Assembly (NCBI GenBank): GCA_946965045.2
Contig: OX337231.1
Span: 186,001-250,000 of the forward strand
Length of the DNA: 64,000 bases
Source: Epithemia pelagica
Lineage: Eukaryota > Protista > Bacillariophyta
Direction of reading: 5' to 3'
In this document: piece by piece, positions 34,238-47,661 of the stretch
How positions within the stretch are numbered: the stretch's first letter is position 1
Layout: each line of letters starts with the position of its first letter
The notes under the pieces: model-generated
What the model was told of the DNA's origin: nothing
The model's database searches: none
Seen by the model: the letters and a program-made list of their open reading frames with translations, nothing else
Made by a program: the position numbers and the translations under genes

Positions 34238-37200
34238 ATGGAATCATCACCTGGACTGCCCGTTGGCTTGACGGTGGGCACGCAAACACCTTCCACGGTG
34301 GGAACCCAAACTCCAGCTCTGAAACAAACCGTGCAAGTAAAGAAAGAACCAGCACCACCCCAATTCTTGTCCAAAGAAGTTTCCTCTCTTGAATTGAATT
34401 TGGAAGAAGAAGAACACCAACAACAGCCAGAGGGAGAAGAACCACAGCTCCAAGACGAAGAAGAACAAGAGCCTTCTCCCACGGCCCCCACCACGCCCTT
34501 TTTGGCCAAACACCGGACGGTTCGCATTCAAATGGACCTGCCAGTCGCCGAAACACCCATTACGAATACTCACAATAACAATAACAATGCCTTGGAAGAC
34601 TCCATGGATTCGGAATTGGAGGAGGACGAGGATGACATGCTCCTGTTACTGCCCCCATCGTCCCCGGCCATTGATTGGAGGTATTGGAAGAGTCTGGTGC
34701 AACACACGGTGTCCCATTTGACCCAAGTGGCCTGTCAGTGTCTGTTGATTGCCGCGTGGTCTCGCGTCTTGCTCGGAACCGAACCAGACTGGCAACATTC
34801 GTTGGCCTTGAATCGCGCTCTGGTGGCCTCGTTGCTGCACGTGGTGGAACATGTCGTGGCACGAAGCACCGACCCAACGACCACCAGTACAACGATTACG
34901 ACGACCAACCTCTTGTTTGTCGCCTTGATTCGGGGCGGTGTGCAATTTTGGTTGCTGCCCATGGTGCCCCCGTCCTTTCGGTGGATGCATGCGTGGACGG
35001 TCCAGGCCTGGGCGTGGACCATGCTCGGGTCGGCCCTGGTGCGATTGGTCCGGGGCAGCATGGTGCCCGGTGGTGCGGCACTTATCCGGGCCAGTCGGCT
35101 CGGACTGGCCACACTCCACGCCTCGAGTGTCGGGTTGTACCAGAAATGTGCCCGAGTTTTGAGTCGGCGCCACAAACAACAGGAGGAGGAGAATCCTACC
35201 CTCTCGTTGCAACAAGAAGAAGAGAACGAGAACGAAGAATTGGACACTCCTCAGGAAGAAAAAGAGGTTAAACCCGACGAATCCGAGACCAATGCCCACG
35301 AGGCTGGGGAACAAGCCACCAACGAGAAGGAGGAAGAAAAAGAAGAATTGGCAGTGGCTGGCGTTTGTACCGTGGCAACCCAAACGGAATTGGTGGTGGA
35401 ACCACAATCCTCATCGTCGGATCATGAAGCGGTCGAAGGCGATGTCATTCTCTACGTTACCAGCAGTATAGAGAGTAGCAAAAGTAGCAAGAAGAGCGCC
35501 CTTGGCATGAGACTGGTGGCTTTTGTGATGTTGCGACTGCGTCCTATCGTACAGTGGTGGCAGGTCCTGGCCACTCACGTCTCGCAACGCGCCGCTCGTG
35601 TGGCACAATCCGTGCAGCAGGCTGTCACTGTCGGAATGCAGTGGGGAATGCGACTGGGTAAATTCTTGACGAGTTTGGTGCAGCATGTTGTCCTTCCCGT
35701 CCTGTTGGACGGACTCCTGCCCTTGGCCTGTGCCGTGGGAGAAATGACCTTGGTGGCCACCGTGGCTTGGACCGCCACGCGGCCCTTGGAATTGTGGATG
35801 GCCTGGGTCGCGTGGCCCATTGCCTTTTATCCCGTCTTGTTTGGTCAAGTCTTGCCACGGGCCCTGGTGCGACTGGCGCACACCCTCCGACGATTGGTCA
35901 GGTCCGTGCCGAGACGCATGGCAGCCTGGTGGCCCCTGAAGAAACCAACGACGGGAGAGACCATGGCCACGACTCCGTCCAAAGCAGGAACCGAATCCAT
36001 GACAACCTCGACAACGACACCGTCCAAATGGTTTGCCACGCCCTTGTTGCTGCAAGACTGGGAAGAGTATTTGGAACGATTGTATTTGATCTGTTGCAAT
36101 ACCGTCTTGTTGGTGGCCTGGGCCCGCGTTGGACTCGAATTGGTCCACGCCTGGACCTTGAGTGGTGTGTGTACGACGACGACGACGACCTCGTCCTTGT
36201 TGGATACGGCCTTGACGTGTAGTTTGTGGCTCGAAGTCTTGAATGCCATTATCAGTTGGACACGGTACTCTTCTTCCACAGCCGCAGCAGCACACGACAT
36301 GAAACTGACTGGACGTCGTTCTTCCTCGTCCAAACGCCGCATGCCACGTTTGCAAGTCCTCTTGTTGTTGGCGGGATTGCGCATGGCCTTGCATCATGCC
36401 ATTGTTACGCCCCTACTGTTGCAAAACCAATCAACTGCCGCAGCCGAGTGGCGTTGGTTTGCCGTGGCGGTTCGTTGGGTCCATGGATGGACCGTGGCCT
36501 GTTGGTCGTTGGGAGATTGTTTGCGATTTGCGTGCTTTGTGTGGACCGATGTGTCGGAATTGATTGTCCAATGGTCGTCCTCCACAACGTATTCGTTGTC
36601 GTCGTCCTCCTCGTTACAGTTGCATCCGTTGGACGATGAGACGGTCCATGACGACGATGCTTCGGTCGTATCCACGACATCCGTTCTCAGTCGGATTCTC
36701 ACCACGACGCAGTCCACCACTTGTTCCTGGTTGTTGTGGTGGTTGCATCAAAGTACCTTTTGGGCGCCGTGGACACGCTATACCTTGGTGGAACCCGTGT
36801 TGTTTCCCCTCACCTCCTTGGGCGAATGGACCTTGATTGTCTTGGCCGCCAGTAGTGCCAATCGGCCCTTGGAATTGTGGTGTATTGTCGTGGCTTGGCC
36901 CGTCTTGGGATTGCGACCCCTCTGGAATCAATTGGAACGACAACGTCGCACCGCTTGTCGTCGCGCCAAGCGACGTCAGGAACGACGCCAACGTCGCTTG
37001 CAAGAACAACAAGAACACGAGCAGTTATTGGAATCGCCCCAACGCCTCAAGAATTTTCAGTCCTCCAGTACGCCCAAACGAAGTTCCTTGTCGTCGTCCT
37101 CTCCCACGACGACAACGACGTGGTCTCCGACCGATGCCTCGGTTTCCTTGGCCTCGACGCGGGTCGCGGCACCACCGGCCTCGCCTCTCATGGAAGAATT

Positions 37201-37819
37201 GCTCGTCAAGAGTGCCAAACAGCAACCACAGTCATTGTCCTCGGGCAGTCATCATCCCCACCATTGTAGTAGTAACGAAACAGTCTCCACGACGGAAAAT
37301 ACCACCGTGGTGGCAGCGGCACCGCCCTGCTCCTCGCATCATGAGGAGGATGAGGAAGTATCGGATTTGATTGCCCCGCAGTCGAGTACGGTCCATGACG
37401 ACGACGACGATGGTAGGCCTCGTCGATCGTACACGACCGGCTTGTCCTTTTGGACCTCTCCGTCCTTGTGGTTGCGACGCCGATCCGTTCCCCGGTCGAC
37501 CGTTACCACGACGACGAGTTGCAACACGAGTTTGACCACAACGCATCCACCCCTCGTGTCTGCAGCCGATGGACCGGCACCACCCATTTCTCAATTTGCC
37601 ATTCGGTTGCCCTCGTGGGACAATTCGTTGCGACGTCAAAATGGAACCGAGCACAAGTTGCGTCGCTTGTTGGGCGAATTGGATCCGCAGGAAGAAGCGG
37701 CCGGACCGACCACATCGGCGTCGGACATTTTTGAGTTGCAGCAACAAGAGGATGACCTGGTACGAGGAGCTGGCTCACGGACTCATGTTTCCTTACCCGC
37801 ACGGATGGAACCACACTAA
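34238..37819 (+). CDS. Multi-pass membrane protein with two degenerate PTPLA/HACD (3-hydroxyacyl-CoA dehydratase)-like modules
   Basis: 1193-aa ORF. Second module: LEVLNA...LRMALH...WSLGDCLRF...WTRYTL..VLFPLTSLGE. First module is paralogous: GEMTL...RPLELW versus GEWTL...RPLELW. Confidence 0.55.
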   Translation: MESSPGLPVGLTVGTQTPSTVGTQTPALKQTVQVKKEPAPPQFLSKEVSSLELNLEEEEHQQQPEGEEPQLQDEEEQEPSPTAPTTPFLAKHRTVRIQMDLPVAETPITNTHNNNNNALEDSMDSELEEDEDDMLLLLPPSSPAIDWRYWKSLVQHTVSHLTQVACQCLLIAAWSRVLLGTEPDWQHSLALNRALVASLLHVVEHVVARSTDPTTTSTTITTTNLLFVALIRGGVQFWLLPMVPPSFRWMHAWTVQAWAWTMLGSALVRLVRGSMVPGGAALIRASRLGLATLHASSVGLYQKCARVLSRRHKQQEEENPTLSLQQEEENENEELDTPQEEKEVKPDESETNAHEAGEQATNEKEEEKEELAVAGVCTVATQTELVVEPQSSSSDHEAVEGDVILYVTSSIESSKSSKKSALGMRLVAFVMLRLRPIVQWWQVLATHVSQRAARVAQSVQQAVTVGMQWGMRLGKFLTSLVQHVVLPVLLDGLLPLACAVGEMTLVATVAWTATRPLELWMAWVAWPIAFYPVLFGQVLPRALVRLAHTLRRLVRSVPRRMAAWWPLKKPTTGETMATTPSKAGTESMTTSTTTPSKWFATPLLLQDWEEYLERLYLICCNTVLLVAWARVGLELVHAWTLSGVCTTTTTTSSLLDTALTCSLWLEVLNAIISWTRYSSSTAAAAHDMKLTGRRSSSSKRRMPRLQVLLLLAGLRMALHHAIVTPLLLQNQSTAAAEWRWFAVAVRWVHGWTVACWSLGDCLRFACFVWTDVSELIVQWSSSTTYSLSSSSSLQLHPLDDETVHDDDASVVSTTSVLSRILTTTQSTTCSWLLWWLHQSTFWAPWTRYTLVEPVLFPLTSLGEWTLIVLAASSANRPLELWCIVVAWPVLGLRPLWNQLERQRRTACRRAKRRQERRQRRLQEQQEHEQLLESPQRLKNFQSSSTPKRSSLSSSSPTTTTTWSPTDASVSLASTRVAAPPASPLMEELLVKSAKQQPQSLSSGSHHPHHCSSNETVSTTENTTVVAAAPPCSSHHEEDEEVSDLIAPQSSTVHDDDDDGRPRRSYTTGLSFWTSPSLWLRRRSVPRSTVTTTTSCNTSLTTTHPPLVSAADGPAPPISQFAIRLPSWDNSLRRQNGTEHKLRRLLGELDPQEEAAGPTTSASDIFELQQQEDDLVRGAGSRTHVSLPARMEPH

Positions 37820-39230
37820 TCCGCCTCCATGACGGACGGACGAGTCGTAGCAACTGCACCAAGCTTGTTGGTGCTGTGTCAAAAAATAAGTGTTTGTGGG
37901 AGGGGAAATTCACGCAATGAAATATATACAGTTTGCGGCATGAGACTCTATAATGTGTACTACATTTATATATATGATGATGAGGAGGAGGAGGAACAAA
38001 TGGCCGGACGACGGAACCCAACAAAGGTGAGTCTGTGTGGGGAGAACAACAGCAGAATCTACCATCAAGACGACGACAAGCCGGAATAGAGAGGAAATCC
38101 CAGTAGCCGATTCGTTCGACCAAACTACTATAGATGGAATCTCATGCCTTGCTACTACTAGAGTGTTGTGGTTGTTGTCACGCGTCATTCTGTGATGGAT
38201 GTGCTATAGAGTCACATCTCTTTCTTTGGTTGTGTTAGGAAGAAAGAAACACAATCTGTTCAACGCATGCACACACAAGGGAGACTTCCTTTGTTGGTCT
38301 GGTTTTGGTATAGAGACACACACCGACTCATGAGAAATATATTCTCTACTAGAGGAGAGAGGAGACACTGCTCACGCTCACGGGATGCCCGTCTTTCCAA
38401 AGAGGATGCTTGCTCTGTTTTGTTGGCCGCGAATCTATATTCATCTCTCCGTCACTTGTCAAACTCCACATATTCGTAGAATAGACGAGGTGGCAATATA
38501 TACTCCTACTTACTCCTACGAAGAAGCAAAAGCAATGTGGTAAGTGGTAATGGTTCGGAGGGATAGAAATAGGAAGACTATCCCCTTCGGCATAGGAACC
38601 AACGCGACCACGTGGCGTCTTTCTCTTGTCGTAACGCATATCGGTCGCACCGCCGCACTCGGCCTTCCTCTTCGCTGTTTCCTGTTTCCTTCATGCACTC
38701 TGTGCTCGCATTGCGCCACAATCGGTGTGCATGTACTTGGAAGAGTCTGTTCCCTGCGCTCCATCTCTCTCCATCTCTCTCTACTCTAATAGAGAAGAAG
38801 TTCTTCTTACTTGCTGCCGCCGCCAAAAAGCTGGAGAGAGAGAGAGTGTGTGTGAATGTGAATGGATCGCTCCGCTTCTTGCGAATCTCTGTCACACACA
38901 ACACCACACCGTTCCTTTTTGTCCTTTGTGGCACGTACCTCTACGGTAGCTGGATAGATTTTTGGTGTGGTTCGATTGTGTCCAGAAGTACCTAGTACAA
39001 AAGACCGGGAATCGTTGTCTCTCCAGGAATGTGTGACGACCATTCGTCCGTGAGTTTGGAACCAACAACAACAAAAGTCGCCGCCACCAAACGAGAGGAG
39101 GGAGTGAAAGAATCACTCCCATTTGATTGAGAGAGGCAACAAGAACCACAAACCAATAAGGAGAAAACGCCTCAAACACACCAACCATATATAGACAGTT
39201 CCTCCTCCTCTTTCTCTCATCTTCATCATC

Positions 39231-41075
39231 ATGCAAGAGCAGCAAACCCCGACGAATTTGCAAGGCCGCCATTTGCGGTTTACCGTGGTGCAAGAAGGAA
39301 CTTTTTTGAGCATTCACTCCCAAACACCCAACAACAACGACAACAACAAGAAGAAGGTACCCACCTTTCAACATGGCAACACGACACTCTGGTTTGATGG
39401 GTATATCATTGACATGATTCAAGCCGTGTCGGAGCGCGCCAATTTTACCTATGAACTCCGTCCACCCAGTGGCAAGGGATCCGACTGTACACCACCCATG
39501 ACGGGAGACGGCAATCACGATGAAGAAGATCGCTTGTATCATTCCGATTACTACACGCAATACAATTGTGGGGCCAACGATGTCACGGAATTCTCCCCAG
39601 AAACATCCACCACCACCAATGATCCTCCCAACGAATGGGCGACGGACATTTATGCCGGCATGTTTTACATCTCCCCCCAACGACAATTACAGAATTGGTT
39701 TACCATGCCCTTTTCGCCACCCACGCAGGGTACCCTTGTTATGTATGGGACCGCCACGCAACTCGAACGGATCCAAGATTTGGTACAAGCGCAACAAGAC
39801 GGTCGCATTCCCCAAGCGGCCTGTGTCTTGGGATCGACAGCCGTCTATCAACTCTTGGAAACGGCCTTTCCCGACTTGAAACTCCGACCCTTTTTTGGAC
39901 AAGCGCAAGCCGATATTTTTGAAAGCATGTACAATGGTTCGTGTCCGGTTCATATTTACGATTCACCCATTGCCGCCAAATTTGTTTTGCATCAATTTGA
40001 AAAGAATCAATGTCACGATCAGAATGGTCAGGCCATTGGCTTGATTGGACAACCTCTGTCGTTTGGGTTGACCCATTACGCCTGGGGTGTCGGTCGGCAC
40101 CAATCCATGACGGTCGTCCAGGCCTTGTCGTATTGGATCAATGTCTTGACCAATTGCAATCCCAAGGATGCACTCGGCGCGTGTCCCCAGGGCAATTTGC
40201 ATTCCATGTATCAAGCCCATGGCGGGGGTACGGGCCAGGAATGTGGTCATGTCAATTTTCCCACCACACTCACGGAAACCACCAATATGAACATTGCCTT
40301 GGTGACCAGCTTGGTTGTTGGTGGTGTCGCGTTGCTTGTGGGCAGCCTCTTGGTGTGGCATTGGATTCGATTGCGACACCAAGAACAGCGATACAAGTAC
40401 CGCTTTGTCGAACAAATTGCCCGCAATATTGAAATTGGACCGTCCCCCGGTCTCATTACGCCCGAAAAATTGGCCGAGGAAATTCAACATATTGCCCAAG
40501 GCAAGGGTGTCATTTCCAAACCCGACTTGCTACAATGGATGTCCGATGTGAAATTGTCCTTTTTATCCGAAGGCGATTTGAATGCCCTGTGGGATGCCAT
40601 GGATGTGCATCGAACGGGGACGGTGGATCCCCTCGAATTTATTCTCTTTTTATCCGCCTGTGGTCCCCAATTTGCTCAAGTCTACCAACAACATCAACAA
40701 TTGCCCAAGACGGAACGCTTGAAATTGGCCGCCCGACGATTGACCAATTTGGCCACCGTCGGAGAAGACGGCGTGCGCAAAATTCAACACAAGCTCGATC
40801 GTGGATACAAGCAAGAATTTCAACCCGGAGATGCCGCCGCGCCCACAACAACGCCATCGTCGTCGTCCTTGTCGTCCTGTTGCAATCCTCCAGCACGACG
40901 ACGGCACTTGGCAACGACGGCACGACGAGCCGAAGAAGCGGCGGCAACCTTTACCGGAGCCGTTCCCAGTACCTTGGCGGCACCCCCATCCTCCACGACC
41001 ATGGCCGTTTCGACCACCACCAACACTTTCATCCATTGTTCAAGCCTCCACGACCATGGGCGTCTGAGCTTGTAA
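39231..41075 (+). CDS. Solute-binding (PBP2/iGluR-LBD-like) domain + single TM + EF-hand, receptor-like paralog A
   Basis: FDGYIIDMIQAVSERANFTYEL, DIYAGMFYISPQR...FTMPF, CVLGST, TM LVVGGVALLVGSLLVW and EF loop DVHRTGTVDPLE. No signal peptide in the ORF, so a 5' exon may be missing. Confidence 0.75.
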   Translation: MQEQQTPTNLQGRHLRFTVVQEGTFLSIHSQTPNNNDNNKKKVPTFQHGNTTLWFDGYIIDMIQAVSERANFTYELRPPSGKGSDCTPPMTGDGNHDEEDRLYHSDYYTQYNCGANDVTEFSPETSTTTNDPPNEWATDIYAGMFYISPQRQLQNWFTMPFSPPTQGTLVMYGTATQLERIQDLVQAQQDGRIPQAACVLGSTAVYQLLETAFPDLKLRPFFGQAQADIFESMYNGSCPVHIYDSPIAAKFVLHQFEKNQCHDQNGQAIGLIGQPLSFGLTHYAWGVGRHQSMTVVQALSYWINVLTNCNPKDALGACPQGNLHSMYQAHGGGTGQECGHVNFPTTLTETTNMNIALVTSLVVGGVALLVGSLLVWHWIRLRHQEQRYKYRFVEQIARNIEIGPSPGLITPEKLAEEIQHIAQGKGVISKPDLLQWMSDVKLSFLSEGDLNALWDAMDVHRTGTVDPLEFILFLSACGPQFAQVYQQHQQLPKTERLKLAARRLTNLATVGEDGVRKIQHKLDRGYKQEFQPGDAAAPTTTPSSSSLSSCCNPPARRRHLATTARRAEEAAATFTGAVPSTLAAPPSSTTMAVSTTTNTFIHCSSLHDHGRLSL

Positions 41076-41553
41076 CAGGATAGCGCCGATTACAGGATAG
41101 TTCTCTTCTAAGAGTATTTGAGTAGTATCTATATCCGTAGGAGTATAGTTAGCTTCCGTAGTATGCGTAGAAATCTTGTCAGTCGCATAAACGTTCTAGG
41201 TCGCGTTACACTCGCGTTGGAGACATGGAGTGAGACATTGTTACGACAGAAGGTACGACGTGTCTGCTTCCGAGCAGTCGTGTTTGTCGACGGTTGTGTG
41301 CGCTGACATGCGCGCCTTTTTGCTACCTCACGAAACAAAACCGAGAGATAGGAGAGAGATAGTTTAGGTACTCTCTTTTCTATTGGTAGCAATGAATCCT
41401 CACAGATTCTCGTCGCCATCTCGAGCGAGAGAGACGTTTGATGCATCCATATTGCTATAGACTCTGGAACGAAAGAGAACGAGATTGACAGATTTCAAAA
41501 GTGCCAACAACAACAATAGCGAGGATCCACCGACCCGTGAGACGGCGGCGGCG

Positions 41554-43512
41554 ATGGGTGCGTTGGTCGTCGGCCACACCAACAACCAGTGGCTTGTTCT
41601 GGTCGCATGGTGGTCCTTGTTGTTGCTGTTAGTAGTACCACCGAGCTGCAGCAGCAGCAGTGTCACAACAACCGCCACGAATGAGTGGATGGAAGCTGCC
41701 CAAACTCAATTTCAGTTGCAAGGCCAACATTTGCGCATCACGGTCGTCCAAGAAGGCACCTTCTTGAGCATTCACCAAAGCAATCCAAACAAGGACGACA
41801 ACAACGACGACAACAAGATACCCACCTTTCAACGAGGCAATACCACCTTGTGGTTTCAAGGCTATATCATTGATATGATTCAAGCCTTGTCGGAACGCGC
41901 CAATTTTACCTACGAGCTCCGACCGCCCAGTGGCAAGGGATCCGATTGTACGCCCCAAATTATTGTCGACGACGACGACAACGACAACCAACAAGAGGAT
42001 CGACTCTATCACTCGGATTACTACAATCAATACAATTGTGGGGCCAACGATGTCAATGAATTGTCCCAAATGGCCAATCCGCCGCAACAGGCCACTGACA
42101 TTTATGCCGGCATGTTTTATATTTCCCCCCAACGACAATTGAAAAATTGGTTTACCATGCCCTTTTCTCCACCGGCGCAAGGGACGCAAGTCATGTATGG
42201 CACGGCCACACAATTGAAAACCATTCAAGACTTGGTTCAGGCCCAACAAGAGGGTCGCATTCTCCAAGCGGCATGTGTTCCGGGATCGTCGGCCAATTTT
42301 GGTGTCTTGCAACAAGCCTTTCCGGACTTGAAACTTGCCGCCTTTTTTGGGACACGAGAAGAGGATGTGTATCAAAGCATGCAATCGGGTGAATGTCCCA
42401 TTCATATTTTTGATTTGCCCGTGGCGGCCCAATTTGTCTTGCATCAATCGCAAAAGGGACAATGTACGGGGTATCAAAATCAACCCATTGGATTGATTGG
42501 AGAACCACTGTCGTTTGGATTGACCCACTATGCCCTCGGTGTCGGTCATCATTTGTCCGTGACAGTCGTCGATACCTTGTCCTTTTGGATCAATGTCTTT
42601 ATGACCTGTCCTCCTCGACAGGACGACGACGAAGAGAGCAGCAACGACGACGCACCGACAACAAGCCTGTCGTGTCCTCCACAAGGCAATTTGTATGCCA
42701 TGTACCAAGCCCATGGGGGTGGCACTGGAACTGAATGTGGTCATGTCAATTTTCCCACCACAGGCACGGAAACCAAGAATATCAATGTCGGTTTGGTCAC
42801 GGGGTTGATTGTGGGTGGTGTCGTCGTGTTGCTGATTTGTTTGGTCGTGTTGCATGCTAGTCGATTGCGGCAACAAGAACAACGGTACAAATACCGCTTT
42901 GTCGAACAAATTGCGCGCAACATTGAAATTGGATCTTCCCCCGGTCTCTTGACACCGGAAAAATTGGCGGAGGAAATGCAACACATTGCCCAAGGCAAGG
43001 GGGTCATTTCCAAACCAGACTTGTTGCAGTGGATGTCGGATGTCAAACTGGACTTTTTGTCCGAACGCGATTTGAATGCCCTCTGGGATGCCATGGATGT
43101 CGATCGAACTGGAACAGTCGATCCCATGGAATTTATCCTCTTCTTGTCAGCCTGTGGTCCCCAATTTGCTCAAGTGCATGCCCAACATGCCACATTGCCC
43201 AAAACCGAACGCTTGAAATTGGCCGCCCGACGCTTAACGACCGTCGCCACAGTCGGAGAAGAGGGCGTGCGCAAAATTCAATACAAACTCGATCGAGGAT
43301 CCAAAGAACTGCAACAACAACAGCCAACAGCAGCAACTACAACCGCAACAACCGAAGGAGCAACACCCGAGGAACTCGTGATGGCATCCCTGCAACGTCG
43401 TCCGTGGACACTCTGGGGACGTGGTACTGGTGGTGGTACAGGTCCTCCGCGTCGTGCTCGTCCCCATCGTCGACATGGTCAAACGGCCATTGTCGAAGAA
43501 GAGGAAGAATAA
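41554..43512 (+). CDS. Solute-binding (PBP2/iGluR-LBD-like) domain + single TM + EF-hand, receptor-like paralog B
   Basis: ATG at 41554 with a signal-peptide-like stretch WLVLVAWWSLLLLLVVPPSC. Same SBP motifs as paralog A, TM LIVGGVVVLLICLVVL and canonical EF loop DVDRTGTVDPME. Confidence 0.8.
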   Translation: MGALVVGHTNNQWLVLVAWWSLLLLLVVPPSCSSSSVTTTATNEWMEAAQTQFQLQGQHLRITVVQEGTFLSIHQSNPNKDDNNDDNKIPTFQRGNTTLWFQGYIIDMIQALSERANFTYELRPPSGKGSDCTPQIIVDDDDNDNQQEDRLYHSDYYNQYNCGANDVNELSQMANPPQQATDIYAGMFYISPQRQLKNWFTMPFSPPAQGTQVMYGTATQLKTIQDLVQAQQEGRILQAACVPGSSANFGVLQQAFPDLKLAAFFGTREEDVYQSMQSGECPIHIFDLPVAAQFVLHQSQKGQCTGYQNQPIGLIGEPLSFGLTHYALGVGHHLSVTVVDTLSFWINVFMTCPPRQDDDEESSNDDAPTTSLSCPPQGNLYAMYQAHGGGTGTECGHVNFPTTGTETKNINVGLVTGLIVGGVVVLLICLVVLHASRLRQQEQRYKYRFVEQIARNIEIGSSPGLLTPEKLAEEMQHIAQGKGVISKPDLLQWMSDVKLDFLSERDLNALWDAMDVDRTGTVDPMEFILFLSACGPQFAQVHAQHATLPKTERLKLAARRLTTVATVGEEGVRKIQYKLDRGSKELQQQQPTAATTTATTEGATPEELVMASLQRRPWTLWGRGTGGGTGPPRRARPHRRHGQTAIVEEEEE

Positions 43513-44890: not shown

Positions 44891-47661
44891 TTATCCCAAT
44901 TTCACTTGTCCCAAATGGGTTTGGACACAAAGGGCTCCAAGGAGGACCCCGGCTCCAATGACACCGGGCGCTTGGAGTTGATACAAGGTGGCCAAGGCCC
45001 CGGCCACGCAAAACACGACGGCATCGGCGGCGGTATGGACACTCTTGGTATACAGAAATAAACATCCGCCTCCAATCAACCCCACGGCGGCGGCATTCAA
45101 GCCTTGCAAAAGGGCCTTGAACCATGCCAAATGCCGGGCATGACTCCACAATGGCAAGAGTGCCAAGATCCACAAAATACCGGGGGCAAAAATGGACCAT
45201 TGGGCAACGACCGCACCACGGATGCTGCCCGTATGGACGGCACCCAAAAAAGCGGCAAAATTACACAAGGGACCGGGCAAGGATTGGGCCAACCCCAAGC
45301 CTTGAAAAAATTGGGCTTCACTAATCCATTGTTTGGCCGTCACGAGTTCGGCATGGGCCATGGGAATCATTACAACGGCACCGCCATAAATCAAACTCCC
45401 AATGCGAAACATGCATTCCATCAACACAATGGTATCCGGTGGAACCGTGGGACTGACATGAACGACCGCCACAAGTACCAACAAAGTAAGGGCCCAAATC
45501 CCAAAATACATAAAGCCTTGTCCCATGGTAATGCCAATTTGTCGTTTCAACATTTCATCCCTCTCATGAGTCGTATGTGGTTGTTGTTGTGGAGGATGAT
45601 TGGGAGAATCCGAGGAATGGTTGTGAGAATTGTGGGTACGATGAAATGGCAAATTGGTTTCTTGTTGTTGTTGTTGTGTGGCTTCTTCGTCCAAGGTCAT
45701 GGTGGCTGCAGTATTCCCATCTTCACCAGCACCTTCCTTGTCGTCATCCTTGTGGTCGTCGTGACTCTTATTGGTATGCCAACCATTCCGACCATTGTGT
45801 TGTTGTTGGTGAGATGTGATTGGGTGCGGCACTCCACCATGTTGTTGCAACAATAAATGATGGATCCACAACGTCATGGCACCGGCCAGCAATAACAGGG
45901 GAAAGACGACACTACTGCTTGGTAAATGAGGATCGCCGGCATTGACCAAAATGGCACCGACGCAGGAGACCAAGGCCACGATCCATTCCAAGGCGTGCAA
46001 TTTTTGACAAAAGCCGTACGTGGCCTTGAAAATCAAACTCACGGCCGCCGGGGGCACACCGACCAACCACATACTAGTAGTACTAGTACTAGTACTAGTA
46101 CTGTGGGAGGCCATATCACTCGGGTCGGCGGTTCCTCCTCCCGTATCATCATTCGGTGGATTCGACGCCAACGACGACGAATGGACCCACAATCCAAAGC
46201 CGGTCAAGACCAGTGCTCCGGGCCAGGCCCACAAGACAAAGGCCAAGAGGCCACCCCAGACACCACCCCGTGTCGCGGCCGATCCAATCACTAATTGCGT
46301 CGACGAGGGTCCCGGAAGGCCTTGGCCTATTATAGTGTTGCGAAACAACATGGAATACCATGCCACGTGTCGGTTTGGTGGGGAATAGCAAAACAAAGAG
46401 ACGAGAAACGAGAGAGCGAGAAAGGAGACAAGAAAAGAGAAAAAGAAGAGGAGAGAAAGGAGACAAGAAAAGGGAAAAAGAAGGAGACAAAAAAGAGAGA
46501 AAAAGAAAAAAGAGAGAAAAAGAAGAGAGCAAAATAGAAGAGAGTCACAAAAGAGGAGAGCGAAAAAAGAGAGAGTCACAAAAGAAGAGAGCGAAAAAAG
46601 AAGAGAGTCAAAAAAGAAGAAGAGAGGGAAAAAGAAGAGAGTCACAAAAGGAAAGAGGGAAAAGAGAGAGTCACAAAAGAAGAGAGCGAAGAAAGAAGAG
46701 AATCACAAAAAAACGAAGAAGAGAGACACAAATGAAGAAACACAAAAAAAAACGAAGAAGAGAATCACAAAAGAAAAGAGCGAAAAAAGAAAAGAGACGC
46801 AAAAGAAGAAGAGACACAAATGAAGAGAGCGAAAAAAGAAAAGAGACACACAAGAAAAGAGACACACAAGAAGAGAGCGAAAAAAGAAAAGAGACACAAA
46901 ACAACAGATCGAAAAAAGAAGAGAGAGGGGAAAAGAAGAGAGACATAACAGAAGAGAGAGGGAAAAAGAGAGAAAACAGAAGAGAGACACAAAAGAAGAG
47001 AGCGAGAGAACGAGAAAAGAAGAGAGAGACAAACAAACAAACAGAGAGGTGCTGGTGTGAGAGCCACCCACCAAATCCACACCCACAGCAGTACCAAGAA
47101 TCTAGAGAACGAACCACAGTCCTGTGTTTGTGTGGTGGTCTTGTGTGTTTGTGTGGTTTTCCCGTTGACAGTTTGGTTGTGTGTGTGTAGCGGAACTCTC
47201 CAATAGAACGTACCCAAGGCAAAGAGTTCCAAAAAGACATCTTCATCGAGCCAGGCATGGACACGGACCAAATGATCGCGAAAAATGGCCACATGAACAC
47301 TGGGACCTCCAAAGGCAATCCATCCCAAATGCCAATACACTTGCAACACATGATAGAGTCGTTGCGGCAGAGAGGACGACGACGACGACGAAAAAGAACC
47401 ACCACCACCACAGCACCCTTTTGTGCCAGCACCACAATCGTCCTTTCGAGGAGGAGGAGGATTCGTAGTGTGGGCATTCCACGATGACGAGGAAGAGACT
47501 AACAAGGGATCCGTTTCGCCACGAAAGGTTGTTGTTGTGGTTGTTGTTGCCGGAGCGCTCATCGTGTCACTTCCCATACTCATGCTAAAATGAGTCGGTG
47601 GTGGTATTGCAAGGCGATCCGAATGGCCGTTGGAAGGAAATGATGGTTGTGTGGTGTCCAT
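44891..47661 (-). CDS. chrA: Long-chain chromate ion transporter (CHR family); 2 exons: 47661-47214 and 46326-44891
   Basis: GWIAFGGPSVH...WLDEDVFLELFALG joined across the GTACGT...TAG intron (47213-46327) to QGLPGPSSTQL. Second CHR domain: GSLIYGG...QFFQGLGLAQSLPGP. Confidence 0.88.
46385..47045. repeat. Purine-rich (sense strand CT-rich) degenerate minisatellite inside the chrA intron
   Basis: Roughly 30-34-nt units such as gagagcgaaaaaagaagagagtcacaaaagaa repeated with variation. Confidence 0.85.

Follow-up and report, generated by a model that had tools for sequence, protein, structure and literature searches.

Background

In iGluRs and amino-acid solute-binding proteins (SBPs), an arginine in S1 binds the alpha-carboxylate of the ligand, and an acidic residue in S2 likewise belongs to the ligand site. 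Bacterial histidine kinases of the BvgS/EvgS type carry periplasmic SBP_bac_3, or Venus-flytrap, sensor domains. STIM1 is a single-pass protein whose luminal EF-hand senses store Ca2+. Here we describe two proteins encoded in a 64,000-nucleotide window of the diatom Epithemia pelagica (contig OX337231.1), in which an initial annotation had claimed two tandem paralogs. Both + strand ORFs exist as adjacent tandem genes, their products are 71% identical over 546 aa (E = 0) with 72% identity between the LBDs, and all of the motifs quoted in that annotation are present in the window proteins.

With iGluR and GLR channels (diatom clade P0095, P0099, P0120, P0122 and P0127), the window proteins share a bilobed S1S2 fold and the ligand arginine, and probably also the Cys motif before M4 and a counterpart of the M4 helix; homology to the diatom GLRs is strong in both the S1 and the S2 sequence. 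Unlike these channels, they have no M1, pore loop, M3 (Lig_chan) or amino-terminal domain; their cytosolic tail is an EF-hand pair and, judging from sequence, they would not conduct ions on their own. In engineered iGluR S1S2 cores (GluK2 construct 3g3i), too, S1 is joined to S2 by a short linker in the matching place, but the fusion in the window proteins is natural, anchored in the membrane by the putative M4-equivalent helix and continued by a cytosolic module. An outer PBP2-type clamshell, one TM and a helix continuing to a cytosolic output are common to the BvgS/EvgS type, to the LBD-histidine-kinase sisters in diatoms (P0022, P0024, P0027, P0050, P0109 and P0128) and to the window proteins, whose output, unlike that of the sisters, is a non-enzymatic EF-hand module.

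A homologous TM-juxtamembrane-EF cassette is found in other diatom proteins that combine an ectodomain, a TM and an EF-hand pair (loci L005-L010 and P. tricornutum XP_002184577.1, whose sole annotation is "EF-hand domain-containing protein"). These differ in their ectodomains (unknown fold, alpha-carbonic anhydrase), have both EF loops canonical, and are without the additional basic C-helix that members of the LBD-EF family conserve. The window proteins resemble STIM1 in being single-pass with an EF-hand module, but in them the EF pair is cytosolic and the sensor-like domain outside, and no specific homology of the window proteins to STIM1 was found. Bacterial family 3 SBPs are soluble or lipid-anchored ABC partners, unlike the window proteins, which are eukaryotic type-I membrane proteins.

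Results

Gene structure, topology and selection

The features of paralog 1 are as follows.

39231..41075, + strand: paralog 1 gene, one intact 614-aa ORF plus stop
39258..40262, + strand: iGluR-type LBD with contiguous S1 and S2, matched by family profile to the GluK2/GluA2 LBDs; its SPQRQ motif holds Arg151 and its IYD motif Asp244
40293..40361, + strand: TM helix, a hydrophobic stretch (residues 355-377) that aligns with the TM of paralog 2
40362..40805, + strand: cytosolic module with juxtamembrane helix, EF-hand pair and conserved basic C-helix ending KLDRG
40602-40637, + strand: EF2 loop, His at loop position 3
40806..41072, + strand: variable, low-complexity C-terminal tail, unconserved in the family alignment

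Those of paralog 2 are given in the same order.

41554..43512, + strand: paralog 2 gene, 652 aa plus stop
41554..41661, + strand: signal peptide region predicted from sequence, a hydrophobic core with a Ser-rich segment after it
41716..42756, + strand: iGluR-type LBD (AF2 model, Foldseek, VIA and HMMER alignments), closing with the pre-TM ECG motif
42124-42138, + strand: Arg194, within the LBD
42151-42174, + strand: end of S1, FTMPFSPP, with a short natural linker in place of M1-pore-M3
42274-42291, + strand: GS motif, within the LBD
42400-42420, + strand: Asp287, within the LBD
42787..42855, + strand: TM helix (residues 412-434), equivalent to iGluR M4 by structural and sequence alignments
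42856..43299, + strand: cytosolic module, its juxtamembrane helix running on from the TM in the AF2 secondary structure
42955-43041, + strand: EF1, non-canonical (AF2 secondary structure, loop census)
43063-43155, + strand: EF2, near-canonical; loop 43096-43131, Thr at loop position 5
43195-43299, + strand: conserved basic helix, LPKTERLKLAARRL...KLDRG, part of the cytosolic module
43300..43509, + strand: variable, low-complexity C-terminal tail (family alignment)

The mechanical ORF of paralog 2 begins at TTG 41485, and the true first ATG lies 69 nt inside, at 41554, where it opens the signal peptide. The orthologue of paralog 2, P0001, is 97% identical, and the homologues P0012, P0017, P0022 and P0024 likewise have hydrophobic N-terminal segments. 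Within each paralog there is a single internal TM helix, with a run of positive charge after it, so that the single TM originally described holds for the internal helix, but paralog 2 has an N-terminal signal peptide in addition. The topology is further indicated by an N-x-T sequon that the ectodomain conserves and by the positive cluster past the TM. No N-terminal signal peptide was found in paralog 1, either here or in the related assembly (two genomes), which leaves its topology uncertain. The segment of ~150 aa after the TM and charged stretch was nearly invariant in the family alignment, as had been claimed for the cytosolic part.

Rates of substitution were calculated against the orthologues on the related contig L011, where an intact paralog 1 orthologue has 93.8% nucleotide identity. 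Whole-gene dN/dS was 0.165 for paralog 1 and 0.109 for paralog 2, and values for the TM+EF part were 0.041 and 0.026, respectively. Both paralogs are under purifying selection and are functional tandem genes. A profile search of 1.8 billion proteins found 538 relatives, and these homologues together with the whole-gene dN/dS exclude a chance origin.

Ectodomain fold and ligand site

Taken alone, the two window proteins had Pfam matches that were all under the gathering thresholds (SBP_bac_3, PF00497, scored 11.9-13.4 bits against a cut-off of 26.4), and the domain assignments are significant only through family profiles and structure. The AlphaFold (AF2) model of paralog 2 had a pLDDT of 90.8 with a 107-sequence alignment, and its top Foldseek matches were iGluR LBD cores (GluN3A/AvGluR1) at a probability of 1.0. 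Comparison by VIA with the GluN2A, GluN2D and GluN3 LBDs returned a Z of 23 and an rmsd of 2.5-2.8 Å over ~250 residues; against full-length NMDA receptors, the alignment continues via model residues 391-393 into M4. The ectodomain family profile matched the GluK2/GluA2 LBDs with an E of 4e-5, and HMMER paired the natural S1-S2 junction with the engineered linker of the GluK2 S1S2 crystal construct. PF00060 (Lig_chan) was unmatched by Pfam in both window proteins, with no M1-pore-M3 between S1 and S2, and Pfam found no HisKA, HATPase_c or receiver domains in either. As modelled, the ectodomain is an iGluR/GLR-type bilobed ligand-binding clamshell, with a short linker where channels carry M1-pore-M3. 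Structure and family profiles thus uphold the PBP2/iGluR-LBD-type ectodomain with contiguous S1 and S2 that had been proposed.

The family arginine aligns with the ligand arginine of GluK2 (YVRE motif) and is kept in 71 of 72 sequences. Together with the lobe-2 aspartate, it also aligns to the corresponding residues of an ABC-transporter amino-acid SBP; the aspartate is invariant in the close family and substituted in about one-third of the wider family. At the membrane, the S2 match to GLR P0099 reaches across the last TM of P0099, and a weak HMMER alignment places the pre-TM ECG on the pre-M4 GECG of GluA2. The sole TM helix probably corresponds to iGluR M4.

EF-hand tail

The tail family profile matched calmodulin with an E of 4e-7, and the tail is homologous to Pfam-significant canonical EF-hand pairs that this genome encodes with other ectodomains (E down to 3e-15). 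The AF2 model shows the EF helix pattern. The cytosolic tail is a genuine EF-hand pair; the pair originally annotated therefore stands in its homology to known pairs, but only the second loop is near-canonical. In a loop census with 12 residues of the form D-x-[DNS]-x-[DNS]-G-...-E counted as canonical, EF1 was non-canonical in every family member and, compared with the P. tricornutum homologue, short by one residue. For EF2, 20 of 44 members had a canonical loop; paralog 2 had a near-canonical one, and those of paralog 1 and the proteins closest to it were degenerate.

Integration of cytosolic Ca2+, the role first suggested for these receptors, is doubtful because EF1 is non-canonical family-wide and EF2 is degenerate in paralog 1, with its His at position 3, and in the nearest relatives of that protein. 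Judged by the loop sequences, any effect of Ca2+ would be confined to modulation of paralog 2, where EF2 alone is near-canonical. The loops being degenerate in paralog 1 and the proteins closest to it, the tail of these members is probably a Ca2+-independent interaction module. This genome also joins the TM+EF tail to a carbonic-anhydrase ectodomain, so the tail need not be a receptor output; its presence on other ectodomains fits a general surface-protein tail equally well. Weak Pfam EF-hand_STIM1 matches were observed in the sister EF-tail family.

Family and lineage

Named relatives are all from diatoms, bar one foraminifer entry. The ectodomain occurs in three architectures, namely GLR channels in which the pore splits S1 from S2 (~170 aa with PF00060 between them), hybrid histidine kinases, and the EF-hand-tailed form; the single-pass proteins are therefore natural S1-S2 fusions of the GLR lineage and not bacterial SBPs. 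The histidine-kinase forms make up at least eight clusters, one of them from a Synedropsis transcriptome. Their LBD, TM and first juxtamembrane residues are nearly interchangeable with those of the window proteins, after which the helix enters HisKA/HATPase/receiver. In the tree, single-pass LBDs and GLR LBDs split with a support of 99, and only short branches part EF-type from HK-type LBDs. We regard the window proteins as GLR-lineage derivatives because the ectodomain is sister to the diatom GLR-channel LBDs and the TM apparently corresponds to M4. The likeness to bacterial SBPs drawn by the initial annotation survives in the contiguity of S1 and S2, but not in descent.

The EF-tailed architecture spans radial centric to raphid pennate diatoms, with full-length EF-type proteins from Stephanopyxis and Arcocellulus transcriptomes. 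EF-type genes are uninterrupted genomic ORFs in several diatoms, and the window ORFs match homologues in order along the whole length, signal peptide to stop, without a break in frame. EF-tailed proteins are a diatom-wide single-pass membrane family, and the intact single ORFs and transcriptome-derived proteins agree with the claim that no pore or enzyme is present.

A six-frame search of this 60.5-Mb genome found no GLR channel. PF00060 gave one sub-threshold match in that search, to an ORF for a K+-channel-type protein (Ion_trans_2), and a diatom GLR query matched only three single-pass paralogs. A short fragment copy lies elsewhere in the genome, at locus L004. A survey reports that some pennate diatoms have lost GLR (PMC11085791). 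The architecture had been put forward as undescribed, and we found no description of an LBD-TM-EF-hand receptor design in the searchable literature; the LBD-TM-EF family goes unmentioned in surveys of Ca2+ signalling in diatoms and of histidine kinases in eukaryotes.

Discussion

We favour, with a probability of roughly 55%, the reading that the window proteins are non-ionotropic amino-acid/carboxylate sensors, with a GLR-type LBD and a tail that has a partner-binding output. The ectodomain would bind an extracellular amino acid or related carboxylate in a 'metabotropic-like', non-ionotropic manner, and ligand would close the clamshell, probably in a dimer. The closure signal would then cross the TM, modelled as part of a single 45-residue helix that extends into the cytosol, and reach the EF-hand pair and conserved basic helix, where a cytosolic partner may be bound or released. 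We infer a sensor mainly because the histidine-kinase sisters carry a nearly interchangeable LBD+TM+juxtamembrane unit.

The TM+EF cassette could instead be a general diatom tail through which Ca2+ or a partner controls the surface exposure, clustering or endocytosis of the ectodomain, the LBD then being a tethered binding protein for amino-acid capture or uptake. Outside-in signalling is needless for an enzyme ectodomain, and the cassette is found with fully canonical EF loops on an alpha-carbonic-anhydrase-containing ectodomain (L008), and on an unrelated Cys-containing ectodomain (L005, orthologous to P. tricornutum XP_002184577.1); a further SBP_bac_3-like ectodomain (P0091/P0164) bears this tail as well. 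We nevertheless consider such inside-out control unlikely. The LBD+TM+juxtamembrane unit is joined straight to HisKA in the sisters and should therefore be able to transmit ligand occupancy; the Ca2+ ligands of the LBD-EF family have decayed under a strongly constrained tail, which is unexpected for a Ca2+ input module; and no transporter partner is evident. The GLR-lineage origin and the apparently retained M4-equivalent helix, which packs on neighbouring subunits in iGluRs, would also suit a pore-less auxiliary subunit, one that assembles together with GLR channel subunits and modulates how these are gated or trafficked. This is quite improbable, and is disfavoured for this genome by the outcome of the six-frame search for GLR and by the GLR loss reported for some pennate diatoms (PMC11085791).

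Decaying GLR remnants, or gene models missing pore or enzyme exons, would account for the lack of a signal peptide in paralog 1 and for the fragment copy at L004, and the homologue transcripts come from other diatoms, none from this genome. That the genes are non-functional is, however, very hard to credit given the purifying selection on both copies, an architecture kept across diatoms, radial centric to raphid pennate, and seen also in transcriptome-derived full-length proteins, and ORFs collinear with homologues without frame breaks. We attach similarly slight weight to a bacterial SBP gained through horizontal gene transfer and tethered to the membrane by a TM. Contiguous S1 and S2, sub-threshold SBP_bac_3 matches and the bacterial SBPs among the Foldseek matches speak for it, but the nearest relatives are diatom GLR channels (E down to ~1e-42), these have in common with the family a Cys-containing insertion in lobe 1, specific to the lineage, and the ECG motif before M4, the best structural matches are iGluR LBDs, and the named homologues are diatom except for the foraminifer entry.

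Beyond the favoured reading of the window proteins as sensors, we tentatively propose, at somewhat less than even odds, that a pore-less GLR-LBD derivative became a portable extracellular amino-acid sensor in diatoms, with alternative outputs in the form of an EF-hand/basic-helix tail, a hybrid histidine kinase and possibly a multi-pass protein. It would constitute a new eukaryotic class of non-ionotropic receptor, with the EF-hand tail as a new type of output converting occupancy to partner recruitment. A pore-less glutamate-receptor clamshell under strong selection, wired to histidine kinases in its sisters, suggests by analogy that the iGluR LBD can drive non-ionotropic signalling. The S1S2 constructs engineered for iGluR structural biology, in use there for decades, have a natural parallel in the LBD-EF family. 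Its members are compact, single-exon candidate receptors that persist in a pennate diatom with no GLR channel detected by six-frame search, and they bear on a largely unknown field, the perception by diatoms of dissolved amino acids, organic nitrogen, and bacterial and algal chemical cues.

Genes, copies and 5' ends

The window DNA is eukaryotic and diatom-like (contig 4, 186001-250000, of a 60.5-Mb, 23-contig assembly), and the features at the locus are listed below in window positions.

34238-37819 (+): flanking ORF of 1193 aa, of low complexity and rich in hydrophobic stretches
about 38975-39130: conserved non-coding block upstream of paralog 1
39231-41075 (+): paralog 1 ORF, 614 aa, head to tail with paralog 2
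39963-40499 (-): antisense ORF
41554-43512 (+): paralog 2 ORF, 652 aa from the first ATG at 41554 (the mechanical start in the ORF list is a TTG at 41485)
41629-42993 (-): antisense ORF
44891-46645 (-): flanking ORF of 584 aa, multi-pass membrane-like

The two proteins share 71% identity over 546 residues, and a third full paralog (L003, identical to the homologous protein P0004) lies ~40 kb downstream, beyond the window. An 85-aa piece on contig 9 (L004, G000:C9:1589405-1589656), which sits inside an open frame of 138 aa and is 59% identical to residues 133-217 of paralog 2, in its ligand-binding domain (LBD), is probably what remains of a pseudogene of the LBD-EF family, as we call the single-pass LBD-TM-EF-hand proteins. 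P0015, a 1076-aa predicted protein from another assembly, contains two complete LBD-TM-EF units; it probably joins two tandem genes by read-through, and it suggests that the family has repeatedly been duplicated in tandem in other diatoms too.

The locus is syntenic with an ENA contig of a related assembly (L011), where both genes are intact; the two sequences diverge upstream of 38601, so synteny ends there. Nei-Gojobori dN/dS between the window genes and their L011 orthologues was 0.165 for the whole of paralog 1 and 0.109 for paralog 2, falling to 0.041 and 0.026, respectively, in the TM and EF part. Both are therefore real, constrained genes, with the strongest constraint on the cytosolic module. 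Antisense ORFs of up to 454 aa span both genes in the window and recur in L011 (3731-4954, -), where the gene caller picked the antisense ORF over the intact paralog 1 orthologue. These long ORFs look like compositional artefacts.

A hydrophobic signal peptide forms the N-terminus of paralog 2, and an N-terminal hydrophobic segment is also found in most full-length homologues. Together with the Arg/Lys cluster that follows the single internal TM helix and a nearly invariant N-F-T sequon in the ectodomain, this indicates a type I topology (N-out, C-in). The start Met of paralog 1 aligns to an internal Met of paralog 2, its L011 orthologue starts likewise, and no leader was found encoded in 38560-39231 in any frame or by comparison with L011. 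Upstream, ~150 nt (about 38975-39130) are identical to L011 within surroundings that are ~82% identical and carry indels. This non-coding block holds an ATG with GTGAGT 7 codons on; it could belong to the promoter or the 5'-UTR, or be a mini-exon. A signal-peptide exon for paralog 1 was considered here and rejected: the 7 codons from ATG to GTGAGT could form a mini-exon whose phase fits the AG at 39238-39239, but they encode no hydrophobic leader.

Both ORFs align collinearly with their homologues over the full length, and thus give no hint of introns or of exons that were missed. The initial annotation had allowed for extra exons encoding a pore or an enzyme; none is indicated by the collinear ORFs or by the transcriptome-derived full-length EF-type proteins of Stephanopyxis turris (510 aa) and Arcocellulus cornucervis (483 aa), evidence that comes from genomic ORFs and from transcriptomes of other diatoms. 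Transcript contigs were sought for the homologues P0007 and P0012, and the encoding contigs were genomic, with no transcript among them.

Ectodomain fold and predicted ligand

Taken singly, the window proteins matched Lig_chan-Glu_bd and SBP_bac_3 below the Pfam threshold, and an NCBIfam search returned no matches. A family profile restricted to the ectodomain matched the GluK2 and GluA2 LBDs in the PDB (E ~4e-5). An initial AlphaFold model built from 15 sequences (pLDDT 53) was excluded from the fold search. The model of paralog 2 residues 47-590, built from 107 sequences, reached a pLDDT of 90.8, and in Foldseek its first ranks were the iGluR ligand-binding cores of GluN3A, AvGluR1, and GluN2A (TM-score on the target at most 0.77), with bacterial amino-acid SBPs ranked below them. 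VIA-align superposed the model on iGluR LBDs with Z ~23 and an rmsd of 2.5-2.8 Å over ~250 residues, and against full-length NMDA receptors the alignment passes through the model's TM helix into M4. These results bear out the PBP2/iGluR-LBD-like ectodomain fold first proposed for both paralogs.

In HMMER alignments, a family Arg (Arg194 in paralog 2) falls on the ligand Arg of GluK2, and the S1-S2 junction falls on the engineered linker of an S1S2 crystal construct; a weak HMMER alignment places the pre-TM ECG motif on the pre-M4 GECG of GluA2. Arg194 and the lobe-2 residue Asp287 also align with counterparts in an ABC-transporter SBP. The Arg is kept in 71 of 72 aligned relatives; the Asp does not vary within the close family, and ~2/3 of the wider family have it. 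In iGluRs and family-3 SBPs, the aligned Arg and Asp bind amino-acid ligands by their alpha-carboxylate and alpha-amino groups. Given these established roles, an amino acid or related carboxylate would, by analogy, be the most likely ligand.

The EF-hand tail and its cassette

The region from the TM to the EF pair matches six other loci of the same genome (E 3e-15 to 3e-4), five of which have Pfam-significant EF-hand pairs, and the family profile matches calmodulin at E 4e-7. These matches identify the tail as a true EF-hand pair that is part of a wider diatom 'TM + EF pair' cassette. An ESM Atlas search with the tail gave no usable match. In all LBD-EF members, EF1 lacks the acids at positions 1 and 3 and has one residue fewer than EF1 of the P. 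tricornutum homologue. In paralog 2 the EF2 loop (D-V-D-R-T-G-T-V-D-P-M-E) is near-canonical; in paralog 1 its third position is His. Among the nearest relatives this loop has degenerated, and over the whole family 20 of 44 members have a canonical EF2. Judged by these loops, the Ca2+ ligands of the LBD-EF tail are eroded. Thus, of the earlier proposal that the tail is an EF-hand module integrating Ca2+, the module stands and the Ca2+ input is doubtful. Beyond the EF pair lies a conserved basic amphipathic helix (LPKTERLKLAARRL...KLDRG), restricted to the LBD-EF family and predicted to be helical with high confidence in the AlphaFold model, which could be an intramolecular or partner-binding helix.

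Other ectodomains are joined to related tails, among them those of L005 and L008, two of the six matching loci. L005 (G000:C1:810628-814029) encodes a signal peptide, a Cys-containing ectodomain of ~300 aa, a TM, and a pair of canonical EF-hands. Its P. tricornutum orthologue, XP_002184577.1 (34% identity over 441 aa), is annotated as an EF-hand domain-containing protein and nothing more, and a literature search on that accession found nothing relevant. Members of the L005 family occur widely in diatom transcriptomes (Trieres, Thalassiosira), and their ectodomain has no Pfam match. The P0091/P0164 cluster (469 aa; many marine contigs) combines a distinct, weakly SBP_bac_3-like ectodomain with a very similar TM/EF/basic-helix tail and a canonical EF2 loop, and may represent a second PBP2-like sensor using this tail; a PDB sequence search with P0164 gave weak EF-hand matches only.

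Relatives and origin

Only 14 relatives came up in a word-based search, and those with a named source were from the diatom Epithemia; an exhaustive profile search gave 538 at E <= 1e-3, of which 124 were at E <= 1e-30. In Pfam scans and domain coordinates, the ectodomain occurs in three architectures.

Architecture a: ectodomain + TM + EF tail, the form at the window locus
Architecture b: ectodomain + TM + HisKA + HATPase_c + receiver (hybrid histidine kinase, HK), at least 8 clusters at 50% identity
Architecture c: true glutamate-receptor-like (GLR) channels, with S1 (profile 13-157), ~170 residues with PF00060, and S2 (from about 170)

One HK-form cluster includes a Synedropsis transcriptome protein, and in the GLR P0099 the S2 match extends over the last TM. 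Homology between EF and HK forms goes on ~12 residues beyond the TM, and in the HK forms the juxtamembrane helix enters the HisKA H-box with no HAMP domain. The metagenomic protein P0153 (1541 aa) has the LBD, then an ephrin-receptor-like Cys repeat and ~8 hydrophobic segments, and may be a fourth architecture with a multi-pass output. All named sources are diatoms, centric and pennate, except one foraminifer entry, which may reflect diatom material.

In a quick maximum-likelihood LBD tree (diatoms only, no outgroup), a branch with support of 99 parts GLR from the single-pass forms, and the EF-type and HK-type LBDs lie close to each other. GLR architecture is common to animals, plants, and bacteria, and single-pass forms were seen in diatoms only; the simplest history would therefore be that a diatom GLR lost M1-pore-M3 and that its cytosolic part was then exchanged, a direction that goes beyond the outgroup-free tree alone. 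A bacterial-SBP-like origin, as the initial comparison with such proteins suggests, is not supported: the relatives include diatom GLR channels, the SBP_bac_3 match is sub-threshold, and iGluR cores outrank SBPs in Foldseek. By evolution, the window proteins are, on this evidence, GLR derivatives, and they fall outside the GLR channel family because the pore module that defines it is absent. They are also not members of SBP_bac_3 by Pfam criteria, nor are they histidine kinases.

Possible function

The reading we favor, at a probability of about 0.55, is a ligand-driven sensor in which an iGluR-type clamshell acts through an EF-hand/basic-helix module whose output is partner binding. In the AlphaFold model the TM helix continues into the cytosol as a 45-residue helix, and in the HK sister proteins the corresponding LBD and helix feed a histidine kinase. 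Bacterial SBP-domain histidine kinases likewise join an extracellular PBP2-type domain to a single TM, and the window proteins would work like such sensors. In the main alternative, the tail would serve surface proteins in general, sorting or clustering them under the control of Ca2+ or a partner, and the LBD would be a tethered binding protein. We give this a low probability; it is favored by the carbonic-anhydrase-bearing relatives of the cassette, such as L008, whose EF-hand pair is homologous to the window tail. It is unlikely that the LBD and M4-like helix serve GLR channels here as an auxiliary subunit: a PF00060 search of the genome gave one sub-threshold match, in a K+-channel-type ORF, a diatom GLR query matched the three single-pass paralogs alone, and GLR loss has also been reported in some pennate diatoms (PMC11085791). 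With no GLR in the genome, this role was set aside.

Two sets of loci mentioned here have features of their own. L008 (G000:C3:3056169-3059549) is a single ORF with an alpha-carbonic-anhydrase domain, a ~370-aa ectodomain without assigned fold, a TM, and a canonical EF-hand pair; L006 and L007 (G000:C9 about 2278829-2303524) are near copies in which carbonic-anhydrase-like sequence lies in a neighboring frame. The K+-channel-type locus L013 (G000:C2:2815868-2819074), a 503-aa ORF with an Ion_trans_2 pore (E 2.6e-18) and the genome's only, sub-threshold PF00060 match, had no detectable attached ligand-binding domain.

A survey of eukaryotic histidine kinases (PMC6324907) does not mention solute-binding or glutamate-type sensor domains. 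In the literature searched we found neither an iGluR-LBD/TM/EF-hand protein nor an iGluR-LBD histidine kinase described, in agreement with the initial view that the SBP-TM-EF-hand architecture is not known from earlier descriptions; the library searched was incomplete, and a prior description is possible.

For the favored sensor, ligand would close the LBD clamshell, probably within a dimer like those of iGluRs and sensor kinases. Closure would move the TM and juxtamembrane helices, and their movement would alter the state of the tail so that a cytosolic partner is bound or released. Ca2+ may tune this response in members with an intact EF2. With an LBD/TM/EF combination not met in the literature searched, these proteins would represent a derivative of the GLR lineage that has no pore, crosses the membrane once and has a non-enzymatic output.
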